NCBI GenBank assembly: GCA_964252035.1
Contig: OZ176212.1
DNA from: Podarcis erhardii
Lineage: Eukaryota
Strand: one strand, 5' to 3'
DNA: 64,000 bases
Shown: piece after piece, positions 42,060 to 48,500 of the stretch
Layout of the letters: every line of letters starts with the position of its first letter
Position numbering within the stretch: the stretch's first letter is position 1
Translations under genes and position numbers: made by a program
Notes under the pieces: model-generated
What the model was told of the DNA's origin: nothing
The model's database searches: none
What the model saw: only the letters and a program-made list of their open reading frames with translations

Positions 42060-42560
42060 TCTCTCTAACATCACTTCCGGGGAGCATCTCAAAAGGGGCG
42101 TCCGAAGGAACAAGGAAGTCCCGCCTCCAGTCACTCAACCGGCTGCTCCGCTTCTTCCGGCCTCCGCGGCGGTTGCTAAGAAGCGGGCGGGGAGAGAGAG
42201 AGGCGTCAACGTCACTGTCTGTGACGCGATTTCTTCGCGACGAGCGAGGCTGGGTGACGCGCTTTCCGGTGCGCCCGCTTCCTCGGCGGCGGCGGCGGCT
42301 ATGGCGGCTTCGGGTCCGGCGGCCGGGAGGCCTCGGGGGCGGCCGGCGGGGGCGGCGGCCTCGGTGGGGCAGGAGGAGCTGCGGCGGCTGATGCGGGCGA
42401 AGCAGCGCGAGGCGGCGGCCGGAAAGAAGAGGAGGGTCGACTCTCCCTTCGCCAGATACCCTTCCTGCGCAGGGGGGGGCGGGGGCGGGGGCGGGGGGGG
42501 GTCTCCTGCTCTGGGCTCCCACAGCAGCGCGGTGAGGTTTGCGGCTGGGATGGAGACGGG
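42060..42560 (+). promoter_or_regulatory. ZNF830 CpG-island promoter / exon 1
   Basis: Dense CpG; ETS motif ACTTCCGG 42073-42080 plus further ttccgg copies; TGACG half-CRE motifs 42200-42262. Confidence 0.8.
42301..42455 (+). CDS. ZNF830: ZNF830 exon 1 (coding part)
   Basis: MAASG...[13 protein letters not shown]...DSPFA+AG|ataccctt (U12-type donor). Confidence 0.9.
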
Positions 42561-45500
42561 GGGGTGGGGGTGGGAAGGGGTTAGGAAAGAACTCTGCAGC
42601 CGCTGCTCCCCTCCTCGTTGCCAGAGTGGGACCCAACACGGCCTGCAAATAATACTAAGAACAGCTAGAAACACAGGAGGGAGGCAACAGTAATTAAAAA
42701 ACAGTCAAACATTGAGAGAATTAAGCTAAATATGAATACAGAATACCTTCTGAAACCATGCAGATAATCACAACAACAAGAAGAAGAAGCATGGACCACC
42801 CCTTTCATTAGCAGCAGTCAGCTCCCAAGAAGACCCCCCCCCATAAAATCTCAGAACCAGGAGAGGTTCATTATGAAGTCTCTCAGAGAGGTTTAGCCTA
42901 AGACTTATTCGTTGTTCCATCAGTGATTATGATGTTACCCAGGTTGCCATAACCATTTCTATGTCTCCTTTCCTCTCCCTGACTCGTTGAAACAAGCAGG
43001 GCTCAAGACCTGCAGCTGTAATACATTGACTGGGGGGGGGGGGGAGGTATGGGTTTGGTCCTGTCCCTTGTGAGGGGGCATTGCCAACTTCTTAGCCTCT
43101 GTTTTCTCCATTCTCGCTGCAGCTCCCAATCTTGTTTGAAAGACTGGCTGCATAGTAGTTTGTTTATTTCATTTCTGTCTCACCTTTTTGTCATGGAGTT
43201 ACATGATTCCCCCCCCCCCATTTAATCCCCACAACAACCCTGTGGGGTAGTCTAGGCTGAGAGCAAGTGACAGCCCAAGGTCACCCAGTGAGCTTCATTG
43301 CCAAATGCAGATTCAAACCTTGGTCTCCCAGTTCCTAGTCTGACACTCTAACCACTACACCACATTGGCTTTTGTTTTTGGTATAAATGACCAAAATAAA
43401 TTCATATTTCTTTAATGTGCCACCGAAACTCTTGTTCTTTGCGGAAGCAGACTAGCACAGCTACCCCTTTGGAAAATAAGCTCTTGCTGTATCTCAGTGT
43501 AATTTATATCTCAGTGGTAGCAAAGCAAAAAGTGGCTTAAAAAAACCTAAGTGTACAGGAATCATTGTTATGAAGCCAAGTCTCTTTAATAGCTTCACAC
43601 ATACAAATTTACATTTTACTTCTCACTTTTAAAAGCTATAATATGGCTTAATAATACGTATTTTAGCCAAGTTTATGTTGCATGTTCAAAGCCCACAACT
43701 GCAGTTTTTAGAGGTGGGTTATTTTTATATTTATTTCCTTGATTCCAAATTCTACATATAACAGTTTGGGAAACTTAAGCTGCTCTCTCTGCAACATGCC
43801 TGTGAAGAGTGAACTGTTGTGGCAAACACATGTGCTTGGGAAGCAACACAAAGAGGTAAGAGACAGTTCTTTTTTAAAAAAAGTAATGTGCTTACAATAA
43901 TTGTTTTATGTGTTATGTTGCAAAGCTAAGACTAATAGTTCTTTTCTTAATTACCAATCTAGAAATTGAAATGCACTGACAATGTTAATATGATTCTGCA
44001 GTACAATAATACATGAGATCTGATTATCTTACAAACTAGACATAATAGTGCCCCCCATTTTTCCCCATTTAAAACATTGACTTTTAAAAGGATGATTATA
44101 ACAAAAATGCAAAGTTGCTTCATATGCTAAATAGTCTAATTACATAAAAGTAACAGTGTCTGTTATCCCTTGTTGCAGGCTTTCTTGAATCTTTTTTGCT
44201 AATATTGCTAGTATTTTGTAGAAAATGTGCTACTTGTGAAAAGAACTTAAATTCTTCTATGTTGTAATAATTTGTTTCTTGGGAATAAAGTACAGGTGCT
44301 CATCTGTTGATTTTAATCCCCACCCCTGCAGAAAGTTGAGCAGTTGAGAAATCTTAAACAATCAGTACCAGGTCCTATTCCTGACACCTCATCTTCTCTA
44401 AAGAGGAAAACAACCAACACAGAATCTCCAGAATTGAAGAAAGCCAAAGGTATGGAAATGTTAGGCTGTGCTTACTGACCTGGTCATTTTTCTACAGTTC
44501 TTCCCCATTCCCCAGCTGTCTTGAAATCATTTGTGGATTAAATATTTTCCTTGGATGGTGTGTTGTATATAAAATTATATGAAGCTGTTAGGAGCAGTCT
44601 GTTGGAGATTTGGGGCACATTTTGAGTCAGGAGATCTGTGCACAAGCTGAACCAGGACCTGGACATACTGGTGGTCTGCGTGAGGACTAAAAACTGAGGC
44701 TGACAAGGCAGACAAGTGGTTCCTGCAGCTGAAAATTGGCGATTTTGCCTCTTCTAGGCGCACTCTCTTTGAAGGGACAGGTACACAGTTAACAGGTGTT
44801 GTTGGAACCACATTTGACCATGGATGCACATGTGGTCTCTATGGAGAAGAGTGCTAGTACAATTTGGCCACTGTGACACATGCATTGGTAACCTCACATT
44901 CTAGAATGTTGTAATGCAGTCTTTGTGGTTCTTCTTCCCTTCCAGCTGGTTCATAGGCTGCTGCTAGTGCAGAATATCATGGACCAGGTGGTGAGTGGTG
45001 CTCTTAACTGAGCACATGCCATGCCCATACTAATGGGTCTACACTAACTACCTGTCACCAAATCAATTTTAAGGAGTTGCTATTTACATATAAAGTCTGA
45101 AACAATTCCATACCAGCTTACCTGGAAGCCTGGTTAAGGACATTAAATGTTCTTGTTCACCGGGAGCATTAGTGTTACAGAATGCACTCCCTTGCTGAAA
45201 TGCATGTTGCAATGCTATTTTGCAACATTTTGCCTGCAATGCTATTTTGCTGGCTTTTGAAAATGATTCTATTACACAGGCATTTTCCCAACCCAAGTCT
45301 CCTGTTTTAAGAGAAGTAATAGGATTTTTTAATTATGGATATTTATGTATTAATGTTTCTCTACTTTTTTCTAATTGCCTAGAAGCCTACTTTAACATTA
45401 AATATAAATGAATTAATAATCAATACAAGTAGTATTCAAGTACCCATAACATGAATGCCAGGCAGATTTGCTAATAATTATAAATTAGTTTTTGATGGGT

Positions 45501-48500
45501 ACTTGCTAGGACAGAGAACAGATTGTGGTAAAATGCTGAAAGTAACCATTCATGGTTTCTAGTCAACTAGATGTGCCCTTGTATATTACACACTGTAGCT
45601 GCTGCTATGGTGCAGTGTTTAAAATGCTGGGGGGGGGGGTGTTTTAAATAAATGCATCCAAAGGGGGTGAATTTAATCTTGGTTAAAGGTCCTAGCCTTA
45701 GAGTGGAAGATTAAAGCTATGTTTAGGTAAACTACAGTTTTATGTGATTGGGAAGGCTACACAAAATTTCTTTTAACTGATTTTATATCTACTTTTTTTG
45801 TATTTTTCCTGTTGCCACATTAATTGCTTTTGTTTCTGATGTTTTTGATTGGTTGTATATTTGTTTTATGGTTCTCTTTTGTAGGCCATCTTGAAAACCT
45901 AGATTAATAAAATTATGTTTAATTTTAAAAAACACACTTTTACATAAGGAAATTTCAGCTGCTTGCAATGCCTGTGTTTCTTGGAGTAACTGTCCTATGA
46001 ATTGTTCTTTTAACATACCATCACCTGACTGTAACCACTTTAACACTGGTCAAACCTTAGCTCAATTACTTGAAAAAACCCTGTTATATTGATCTATTAT
46101 TATTTATTAAATTTGTATACCACCATTCACCCACAGTTCTAAAAGAGATGACAGTGCAATGTGGATGGAAGAAGGTGCTATTTTTCAATAGTTTTGAGGT
46201 GTCACTCTATCAAGACATATTTTAAGGCTGCATAATGTGGGTTGCTATGTCAGCAAAAAAGTAGCCTCCAAGGGATTCAATGACATCACAGTCATTGCGT
46301 CACAATCATTGGCATCATAAGTTTTTATCGTCTCCTGCACTCAGAGGTAGAGTGTGTGCTGAGAGAGAGAGACTTGCCCAGGTTGTCCCCACTGAGTGGG
46401 GATTTGAACTTGGCTTACCTTAGTCAGACGACTGATCCAGAGTTCTTCATGGGTCACTGCAGCTTGGGTGTGAAGTTCATCTTTGTGTTCTTTTTCTGTT
46501 TTAAATGTGACAGAACTCTGATAAAATGTTTTGCAGATTCAAGGGACCATCCGCAAACACTCTCTTCTGGGTAAGTTGAGATGGTTGTTATTAGCTCTGT
46601 TTTTACATTTTCTTTTTTCATAGTTATGGATATGAACAGCATGTTATATTTGTTATTCATTGCCTGAAGTTCTAACTGGTGCTGAGAAATTTGCTTTCAA
46701 ACAGGGTAGTTTGAATGTTCCCATATGGCAATTGTTCAAATGCAGTGACTGACAACATTGTTTCCATTATACTACAATTACTTCAGAGAAAATTCTTATT
46801 TCGTGGGGAGTCCCAGATGGGGACACCCAATGGAGGTGACCACCATGTGGAAAGCTGTTTGGGAAACACAAATTTGGCATGGGGAATGTCTATTTAAGGG
46901 AGGAAAGTTTTGTTTTTGTTTTTTAAATCACCTTAGGTTAGGTGTACTTGAAATAATTGTCTTGATTCTGGCTTGTATTATGATGGAATGTTTTTAAGTT
47001 GTTGTGGAAAGCCAGCCAGATGGGTGGGGCATAAATAATAAAATTATTGTTATTGTTATTATTTCATTTTTTAAGGCTGCCAGCAGATTTTTTTGGAAAA
47101 AATGAACAAGCAGAAGCAGAAAAGGCCTCTTGCAAAGCTTCAAGTGGTGGCTTATTACTTGGAGACTCTGAAGAGGAGGAGGAGGAGGAAGAGGCCGAAG
47201 AGATGGCCAAAGAAATCCAGGACAACAGCAGCAAACCTCCTTTGTCGTCCACAGTGCAGCATACAGCAACACCAGCCCACCCTCTAAAAGTAGACACCAC
47301 TGCTTTACCATCAGGTAACTCTGGGACTTTCTCTGCTGACTTTACAGTAAAAAAATATAGAGAGTTCCAAGGCCACTCCAGCTGACATGGTACAAATCAG
47401 AAGTTTTGCTTAACTTTACCTCTGAAGTTGTGTCATGTCCTCTTTTATGGCTTCCGAAGTATTGCTGTCCACATTAGGTAGGCTTATCCGTATATACTGC
47501 AGTGTGCTCCACGTGTGTCATACATGCATATTAGGTGGCTTCTCATGCCAAATGAAAACTAGCAATCATCTGCTATTGATGGTTGTAGGTGTCCAGAATT
47601 CTGTTTCCAAGTGTGACCAGCCAGATGCTTCTGAGGAACTCCAATATGGCATGGAGTTCTGTTCATTACTAGCATCTAGTATGCAGAGCCTCTGCGGTTC
47701 TCTCACAGTACAACAGCATAGCTGACCAATTCTGATATATACAATTCAAGGACTAGTACGGGGGTAGGCAACCTAAGACCCGGGGGCCGGATGCGGCCCA
47801 ATTGCCTTCTCAATGCAGCCTGCGGACGGTCCGGGAATCAGCATGTTTTTACATGAGTAGAATATGTGTTTTTGTTTAAAATGCATTTCTGGGTTATTTG
47901 TGGGGCATAGGAACAGTGGACCGGCCCATGGTTGAAAAAGGTTGCTGATCCCTGGACTAGTATGTGGTGATTTTTAAATACATGAGTCCCCAAATGGTAT
48001 TATGAACAAGCAAACAGTTTATTTTATAGCTTAGTGTATGTTATAGCTTTAGTCTACAAGGGGTGTAAATTTGGTGCTTTTCTAAAAAAAGTGCACAGTT
48101 GCGACAAATTGAGCTTCAGTGCAACACTATTCAGGATTCAGGATTAGGATAGACCTATCCTAATAAATTTTGTCTAGTCATTTTAAAGTAGTGGTCATCA
48201 CCAACATGCAGCCCAGTCCTATGCATGCGTTTACTGAGTCCAGTGGGACTACTGCTAAGTTAAGTGTGCACAGTATTTCAATCTAAGCAGTGGTGAATCT
48301 TGTAAGTTAATCATACTGTGAAGTATTTCCTTTTGTTGATACTTATATCAACTTTATTGGTTCATCACAAGGTCTGAGTGATCTCTGTTTTTCCCTCTCT
48401 GCTCATCGTTTGTGCAATTAATACATCCATTTTTAGTGACTTGGGCTTTCAAATTGTGCATATTACACTGGCAGTGATTCTTTTCTCTGTTGCAGACTAT

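Follow-up and report, generated by a model that had tools for sequence, protein, structure and literature searches.

The window, a 64-kb stretch of DNA, contains between 42301 and 57040 a ten-exon ZNF830/CCDC16 gene on the + strand. ZNF830 exons were queried one by one, with the annotated orthologues P0006 (gecko) and P0272 as full-length queries, and all ten could be placed in the window, their coding pieces totalling 1140 nt (379 aa). The gene identity given in an earlier note on this DNA, made from its letters, is borne out by matches of the exon 2 peptide to the Pfam families zf-C2H2_jaz (E=2.3e-7) and zf-met (E=3e-7) and by the identity of the exons with lacertid ZNF830, which is 91% for Podarcis, 90% for Lacerta, and 86% for Zootoca; Podarcis is the nearest protein among those sampled. 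A search of PDB chains with the exon 2 peptide and with full-length Podarcis ZNF830 gave 0 matches.

All of the exons lie on the + strand. The coding part of exon 1 (42301..42455), delimited by translation and by tblastn with P0006, runs from the ATG at 42301 to the AG of a split Arg codon and reads TTC GCC AG at its 3′ end. It is followed by intron 1 (42456..43755, +, 1300 nt, phase 2), which has AT-AC termini and appears to be U12-type, and then by exon 2 (43756..43855, 100 nt), which begins A TAT AAC at 43756, encodes a U1-like C2H2 zinc finger, and ends at 43855 and not at 43856. Exon 3 (44332..44449), exon 5 (47076..47314), and exon 6 (48496..48586) were located by tblastn, and the peptide of the short exon 4 (46537..46570, 34 nt) matches Podarcis proteins. 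Exon 7 (49079..49142) is followed by a GC donor (GCAAGT at 49143), and the gene continues with exon 8 (53264..53344), exon 9 (54564..54640), and the coding part of exon 10 (56860..57040), with the stop at 57038-57040.

The earlier note had singled out intron 1 as a minor-spliceosome intron with a variant donor, and its coordinates hold when read directly: exon 1 ends at 42455, exon 2 starts at 43756, and the split codon AG|A, an Arg, restores the conserved peptide. Four placements of this junction yield an identical mRNA (AT-AC, TA-CA, AC-AT, and CC-TA), and AT-AC is the sole recognised intron type among them. The intron starts with ATACCCTT and ends in TTCTAC, the letters that the earlier note had given for 42456 and 43755. 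Its 5′ splice site, ATACCCTTCC (42456..42465, +), has C at +4 (42459) and T at +8 (42463) and matches RTATCCTT at seven of eight positions, with C, not T, at +4. The branch-point sequence, TTTCCTTGAT, occupies 43734..43743 (+), just where it had been claimed. Its branch A, at 43742, leaves 13 nt to the end of the intron, and the segment at 43736-43743, TCCTTGAT, agrees with the consensus TCCTTRAY at all eight positions. This distance falls inside the published optimum of 11-13 nt from branch site to 3′ end (PMC3584512), and neither a DNA contig (X4) nor an unspliced RNA contig (from run X15) covering the branch site has any difference listed within it. Between the branch site and the 3′ splice site, whose terminal AC lies at 43754..43755 (+), are 12 nt, TCCAAATTCTAC, that contain no polypyrimidine tract; the earlier description of the intron as having no long tract is right for these 12 nt only, since a T-rich stretch of 25 nt precedes the branch site.

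How much weight these signals can bear depends on their combination. RTAYCCTT occurs six times in the window against nine expected, so the donor octamer alone is unsurprising, and the weight rests instead on the joint occurrence of the signals and on orthology. TCCTTRAY is found seven times on the + strand of the 64-kb window, and the chance of meeting it in the roughly 10-nt slot allowed before a 3′ end that the reading frame forces is about 1e-3. Intron 1 agrees with canonical AT-AC U12 introns (ATATCCTT ... TCCTTRAY) in its termini, in positions +1 to +3 and +5 to +8, and in its branch site, which likewise stands 13 nt from the 3′ end with no tract behind it; the difference is C at +4. These sequence signals make it very probable that intron 1 of ZNF830 is a true minor-spliceosome (AT-AC) intron.

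For comparison we fetched ten further amniote loci, leaving aside a primate-like ZNF830 fragment (P0016), which gave a set of 11 sequences with the window: three other lacertids (Podarcis raffonei, Lacerta agilis, and Zootoca vivipara), four other squamates (Rhineura, Anolis, Heteronotia, and Candoia), a turtle (Caretta), the chicken (Gallus), and an echidna (Tachyglossus). An AT...AC intron with the 5′ end ATA(T/C)CCT lies at the same codon and in the same phase in 11 of 11; from monotreme through bird and turtle to squamates, it splits the Arg or Lys codon between SPFA and YN. The comparison of donors across species that the earlier note had proposed thus finds AT-AC ends kept in all ten of the other amniotes, each with a U12-like branch motif (TTCCTTRAC-like) at a distance of 10-14 nt from the 3′ end. 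The intron ranges in length from 130 nt in chicken to 5149 nt in echidna, so only the signals are conserved. The four lacertid introns are 75% invariant overall, and we dropped conservation within lacertids as evidence for signals, since four introns this close are too similar to inform.

Two RNA runs, X15 and X16, which derive from a related species (organism H) and are not certainly the window's own, bear on the exon boundaries. GT..AG joints connect exon 2 with exon 3 (43855>44332) in both runs and exon 3 with exon 4 (44449>46537) in X16, so these runs contain spliced ZNF830 mRNA. The whole of X16 record 8 (272 nt, depth 113.2) can be assigned to pieces of 5 + 120 + 98 + 49 nt: the 98-nt exon 2 piece stops exactly at 43756 (bin depth 28.3 = 113.2 x 45/180), and the depth figures assign 49 nt to the exon 1 bin at 42361-42540 (30.8 = 113.2 x 49/180). 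The exon 1>2 joint is not among the joints listed (15 of 75), and the donor end rests on this depth arithmetic together with the record length; the spliced contig is consistent with a 42455/43756 junction. SPFARYN(S/N)LGN, a peptide that requires this junction, is present in the ZNF830 proteins annotated by NCBI for four lacertids. A word search with Podarcis muralis residues 1-95 for junction-spanning lacertid protein fragments derived from RNA found none, only fragments from birds, fish, and others. Contig depths were rejected as a basis for estimating intron retention, since the unspliced contig starts within a high-copy repeat and such depths do not reflect local coverage.

Most of this description of the intron is already in the literature. 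Lin et al. 2010 (BMC Evol Biol 10:47; PMC2831892) reported an AT-AC U12 intron in fly CG11839/CCDC16, the orthologue of ZNF830, found the orthologous U12 intron in frogs, lizards, chickens, platypus, and lamprey, and explained its absence from placental mammals by retroposition. On their account, the counterpart of intron 1 in fly CG11839 is that gene's single U12 intron, with the same gene, position, AT-AC termini, and U12 branch site, and the multi-exon gene that they describe as kept in non-placental vertebrates is matched in the 11 amniote sequences here. The central proposal of the earlier note, a U12-type AT-AC intron in ZNF830, is thus supported by the sequence hallmarks, apart from the letter at +4, and by orthology with the published fly and vertebrate intron, and it was known before. 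The same holds for its suggestion that a spliceosome factor would be under minor-spliceosome control: ZNF830 is indeed spliceosome-associated, being a member of the XAB2/intron-binding complex and a binding partner of PPIL2 (PMC6315705), but the point is made in PMC2831892, which also discusses such cross-dependence for the Drosophila SF3A1 U12 intron, likewise in the minor-spliceosome-dependent pre-mRNA of a major-spliceosome protein, though in a different gene and with GC-AG termini (PMC2831892 supplement). Its statement that the intron is lost from the mammalian copy is correct for placental mammals (PMC2831892) and too broad for mammals as a whole, since the echidna retains a multi-exon gene with the AT-AC intron. 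Intron, dependence, and placental loss by retroposition are therefore all in Lin et al. 2010, and the sole new detail is a one-letter change in the start signal of intron 1, common to the four lacertids compared.

That change is real. The donor ATACCCTTCC is identical in 4/4 lacertids, as the earlier note's reading of C instead of T at +4 would have it, and +4 C occurs in 0/7 non-lacertids, 7/7 of which read ATATCCT; the next letter is G, C, or A in Rhineura, Anolis, Heteronotia, Candoia, Gallus, and Tachyglossus; the Caretta donor is ATATCCTTT. Lin et al. 2010 gave no lizard donor sequences, to which the present comparison adds the lacertid combination of C at +4 and T at +8 against T at +4 in every other species sampled. 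Judged by these donors, the +4 C is a substitution fixed in the lacertid lineage and neither an error nor a private allele. A literature search for ATACCCTT as a U12 donor found none, the sole match being GTACCCTT of human VPS41.

What the substitution does to base pairing is less straightforward. The AAGGA box of U6atac pairs with UCCUU of the 5′ splice site (PMC2396436), and the U6atac mismatch that the earlier note foresaw at +4 follows from this; its companion idea, that C strengthens U11 pairing by exchanging G-U for G-C, is uncertain, as sources differ on whether that pairing extends from +4 to +9 (PMC11347168) or from +5 to +9 (PMC10853781). An Rfam scan of the window gave no matches, so there was no local U11 or U6atac gene against which to check the pairing. 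The predicted AAGGA pairs lie at +5 to +8 in lacertids and at +4 to +7 in their squamate relatives, with four Watson-Crick pairs in each, so that T at +8 beside C at +4 would keep all four pairs and move them by one position. Neither the fixation of the +4 C across Lacertidae nor the restoration of the U6atac pair count by T at +8 had been noticed in the earlier note. The lacertid donor is probably a working and roughly equivalent U12 donor, and the change at +4 would be near-neutral or compensated. Whether a coupled change on the lacertid stem, +4 T->C together with T at +8, moved the U6atac helix one position along at unchanged length, and perhaps the U11 helix with it, is a more specific proposal, which we regard as possible and on balance doubtful.

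A different reading of the same letter, put forward in the earlier note, is that +4 C weakens the donor by a C-A mismatch with U6atac and so slows intron 1 removal or makes it less complete in lacertids, a regulatory brake, peculiar to this lineage, on a spliceosomal protein. Position +4 does face the 3′ A of the AAGGA box (PMC2396436), U12 introns are generally spliced two- to fivefold more slowly and can be rate-limiting (PMC3584512), and record 2 of X15 is an unspliced contig across the border of intron 1 and exon 2. That contig starts in a genome-wide repeat, however, so its depth is uninformative, nor can parts of a gene be ranked by contig depth; with T at +8, four AAGGA pairs are regained in 4/4 lacertids, and the +4 C has become fixed in at least three genera in a gene that is single-copy and looks essential. 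We consider a brake improbable. Two further alternatives would remove the intron from the minor spliceosome altogether, and both seem to us very improbable. An AT-AC intron spliced by the major (U2-type) spliceosome, as in the rare U2-type AT-AC class, could appeal to an exon 1 that ends in CAG, suiting U1, to the departure of the donor from RTATCCTT at +4, and to the finding that AG at −2/−1 shifts GT-AG U12 sites towards U2-type use (PMC10853781). The features of that class are a donor fitting U1 and U6, a pyrimidine tract, and a degenerate branch site, whereas the window intron has CCC at +4 to +6, which is unsuited to U1, and its branch site is a perfect U12 match, placed at the 13 nt typical of U12 introns and not followed by a pyrimidine tract; moreover, its orthologues carry the full ATATCCT donor, and in fly and vertebrates alike the ZNF830 intron has been classed as U12 (PMC2831892).

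Against the U12 reading stands the human VPS41 intron AA|GTACCCTT, which shares the TACCCTT core with C at +4 and, although listed as minor in MIDB, has been reassigned to the U2 type (PMC10853781, Table 1). The VPS41 intron is bound by U2AF1, its termini are GT-AG, and its branch site (TTTTAAAT) is poor, in contrast to the AT-AC termini and perfect U12 branch site of the lizard intron, which leave the major-spliceosome route not readily available to ZNF830 intron 1. The other alternative, in which the main mRNA is spliced at GT-AG sites (such as donor 42532 GTGAGG and acceptor 43711, or 42537 and 43764) and the AT-AC junction is an artefact of protein homology, has in its favour that several in-frame, stop-free GT/AG combinations are present and that an earlier annotation of the fly gene made this very mistake (PMC2831892 supplement). 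Such pairs would add 20-60 unconserved residues or remove the conserved YNS, the exon 2 piece of X16 record 8 ends behind AC, not AG, and, among lacertids, no part of the intron is less conserved than the G-rich stretch that follows the donor (0.06 invariant). We are thus left with high confidence in the combined reading that the window holds a ten-exon lacertid ZNF830 gene, that its intron 1 is the gene's ancient AT-AC U12-type intron, and that its +4 C is fixed in the lacertid lineage.

If intron 1 depends on the minor spliceosome, as its signals suggest, the published model of minor splicing would have the U11/U12 di-snRNP recognise the 5′ splice site and the branch site TTCCTTGAT jointly, U6atac would then take the place of U11 at the 5′ splice site, and the AC 13 nt behind the branch A would serve as the 3′ splice site. 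That a protein of the intron-binding complex should itself need minor splicing to be expressed, in vertebrates other than placental mammals, would repeat a known theme. The lacertid +4 C and +8 T are a small natural experiment on how far the rigid U12 5′ splice site tolerates a shift: a coupled change, if true, would show compensation evolving naturally within a splice signal under strong constraint, and might measurably alter the rate at which the mRNA of a spliceosome protein itself matures, and the donor would be of specialist interest only if splicing kinetics prove changed.

AT-AC introns are still missed by some annotation pipelines. The Podarcis lilfordi ZNF830 models, which begin at a Met inside exon 2 or later, are an example.

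Intron 1 of ZNF830 (CCDC16), at 42456-43755 on the plus strand, has confirmed AT-AC ends and is very probably a U12-type intron. The open reading frame from the ATG at 42301 encodes MAASGP..., its first exon closes with the bases AG at 42455, the intron opens ATACCCTTCC directly after this, and exon 2 reads A TAT AAC AGT... from 43756. The split codon AG|A restores Arg, and the borders and AT-AC ends proposed in the earlier note are thereby borne out by direct reading and reading frame. Sliding the junction gives four equivalent placements (AT-AC, TA-CA, AC-AT, and CC-TA), of which AT-AC is the sole recognised intron type. The predicted U12 branch site, TTTCCTTGAT, also lies where expected, at 43734-43743, and its A (43742) stands 13 nt from the final base of the intron, within the 11-13 nt reported as optimal for U12 introns (PMC3584512). 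Directly 3' of the donor is a G-rich run, GGGGGGGGCGGGGGCGGGGGCGGGGGGGGG, at 42464-42506, where the lacertid copies of the intron agree least (0.06 invariant). The contigs of all runs break within it, so the donor is covered by no DNA run.

The donor octamer is by itself unremarkable, with 6 matches to RTAYCCTT against 9 expected. TCCTTRAY occurs 14 times in the window on both strands, about as often as in shuffles, which puts the probability of a copy in the roughly 10-nt slot before the frame-fixed 3' end near 1e-3. The case for a U12 intron stands on the combined signals and on orthology. If a GT-AG pair were used instead of AT-AC, several in-frame, stop-free combinations would be available (e.g., 42532/43711 or 42537/43764), but these would insert unconserved G-rich residues or delete YNS, and they clash with a contig piece ending at 43756. 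Removal of the AT-AC intron by the major spliceosome is likewise unlikely, since the CCC at +4 to +6 mismatches U1 and the branch site is of perfect U12 type at U12 distance.

None of the runs on record as RNA covers the ZNF830 stretch. The RNA-like data consist of six small runs of a related species (organism H), whose RNA nature is guessed; three of these were aligned, together with one DNA run. Exact GT..AG joints between exons 2 and 3 (runs X15 and X16) and exons 3 and 4 (X16) show that the organism H runs contain spliced ZNF830 mRNA; the exon 1-2 joint is not among the joints listed (15 of 75). One X16 contig (record 8; 272 nt, depth 113.2) has an exon 3 piece of 120 letters and an exon 2/3 joint whose shorter side, 98 letters, is 43756-43853. 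The depth of 28.3 in bin 43621-43800 equals 113.2 x 45/180, so the exon 2 piece starts exactly at 43756, and the depth of 30.8 in bin 42361-42540 equals 113.2 x 49/180, which places 49 more letters of this contig at the end of exon 1, fully explaining its length (5 + 120 + 98 + 49 = 272). By this bookkeeping of pieces, bin depths, and length, the exon 2 part of the contig stops exactly next to the AC, and the contig runs on into exon 1. The 42455/43756 junction in RNA is thus supported on the 43756 side by piece end and bin depth, while the exact donor letter is one that we infer.

Annotated proteins carry the same junction. The peptide SPFARYN(S/N)LGN, which requires it, is present in NCBI-annotated ZNF830 of Podarcis raffonei, P. 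muralis, Lacerta agilis, and Zootoca. Two P. lilfordi models named Coiled-coil domain-containing protein 16 (P0270 and P0271) begin at a Met that lies within exon 2 or in read-through of intron 3, so exon 1 was missed by that annotation, whose pipeline was apparently unable to bridge the AT-AC intron.

For ten species, the intron that separates SPFA from YN was delimited in the genomic ZNF830 locus. Every species compared, the window included, has the same codon phase, an AT start, an AC end, and, 10-14 nt ahead of the 3' end, a U12-like branch motif. Intron length ranges 40-fold, from 130 nt in chicken (623-752 of locus L009) to 5149 nt in echidna, with splice signals unchanged, so conservation is confined to the signals. 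The donor is ATACCCTTCC in the window, Podarcis raffonei, Lacerta agilis, and Zootoca vivipara; ATATCCTG in Rhineura floridana, Anolis carolinensis, and Tachyglossus aculeatus; ATATCCTC in Heteronotia binoei and Gallus gallus; ATATCCTA in Candoia aspera; and ATATCCTTT in Caretta caretta. The C for T at +4 (42459) to which the earlier note drew attention holds up in this comparison of bird, turtle, echidna, and squamates: it is common to 4/4 lacertids and absent in the amphisbaenian Rhineura and all more distant species compared. Its presence in all four lacertids rules out an assembly error or private allele. A T at +8 (42463) accompanies it in lacertids and is found elsewhere only in the turtle.

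The U6atac box AAGGA faces donor positions +4 to +8 (UCCUU) (PMC2396436). Against this box, non-lacertid squamates form four pairs at +4 to +7 with +8 mismatched, lacertids form four at +5 to +8 with +4 mismatched, and the turtle forms all five. The mismatch with U6atac claimed for the +4 C is therefore correct but offset by the pair at +8. The accompanying claim of a G-C gain with U11 at +4 would depend on a presumed U11 register. In published accounts, U11 leaves +1 to +3 unpaired (PMC3584512), its pairing span differs between sources (+4 to +9, PMC11347168, versus +5 to +9, PMC10853781), and its binding region has only four free nucleotides (U11 snRNP structure preprint). The single unspliced contig begins inside a high-copy repeat, and contig depths are uninformative on splicing speed. 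We found no paper with a U12 donor of the form ATACCCTT; the nearest case to the lacertid donor is human VPS41 (GTACCCTT), an intron whose branch site is poor and which has since been reassigned to the U2 type.

In its essentials the finding is already published: Lin et al. 2010 list the AT-AC U12 intron 1 of fly CG11839, which is CCDC16/ZNF830, in their Table 2, report the orthologous intron from frogs, lizards, chickens, platypus, and lamprey, and describe its loss by retroposition in placental mammals and many fish (PMC2831892). Since echidna retains the intron, "mammalian" in the earlier note's "intronless mammalian copy" is too wide and is to be replaced by "therian" or "placental". That major-spliceosome proteins in turn depend on U12 splicing is discussed in the supplement of the same paper, with SF3A1 as example (PMC2831892), and ZNF830 itself is part of the XAB2/intron-binding complex and binds PPIL2 (PMC6315705). 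What is new is limited to the C at +4 and T at +8 common to the lacertids, a small descriptive detail of uncertain consequence.

The gene assignment rests on window exons searched singly and on annotated orthologues used as full-length queries. The exon 2 peptide matches zf-C2H2_jaz and zf-met; exon 2 alone, searched against protein representatives, retrieved full-length gecko ZNF830 (P0006), from which a word search reached ZNF830 of about 120 vertebrates. The window exons are nearest to ZNF830 of Lacertidae (Podarcis raffonei 91%, Lacerta agilis 90%, Zootoca vivipara 86%), which assigns the window to a lacertid in or close to Podarcis. Ten plus-strand coding exons, at 42301-42455, 43756-43855, 44332-44449, 46537-46570, 47076-47314, 48496-48586, 49079-49142, 53264-53344, 54564-54640, and 56860-57040, total 1140 nt (379 aa). 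Introns other than intron 1 are GT-AG, save intron 7 (49143-53263), a U2-type GC-AG intron opening GCAAGT, with borders set by reading frame and orthologue alignment.

Contig depth in the DNA run of a related species reaches thousands to >100,000 at 43081-43440, 46861-47220, and 45781-46140, inside ZNF830 introns 1, 3, and 4, and many chimeric joints connect 43240-43370 with 46340-46410. These stretches look like high-copy, SINE-like interspersed repeats, one family having copies in both intron 1 and intron 3. On the minus strand, at about 57100-64000, ZNF830 has a tail-to-tail neighbour, a KH-domain (PCBP-like) gene. In the annotated lizard, turtle, and chicken loci (L001, L003, L004, L008, and L009) this neighbour overlaps the 3' end of ZNF830, a gene order that sauropsids have conserved.
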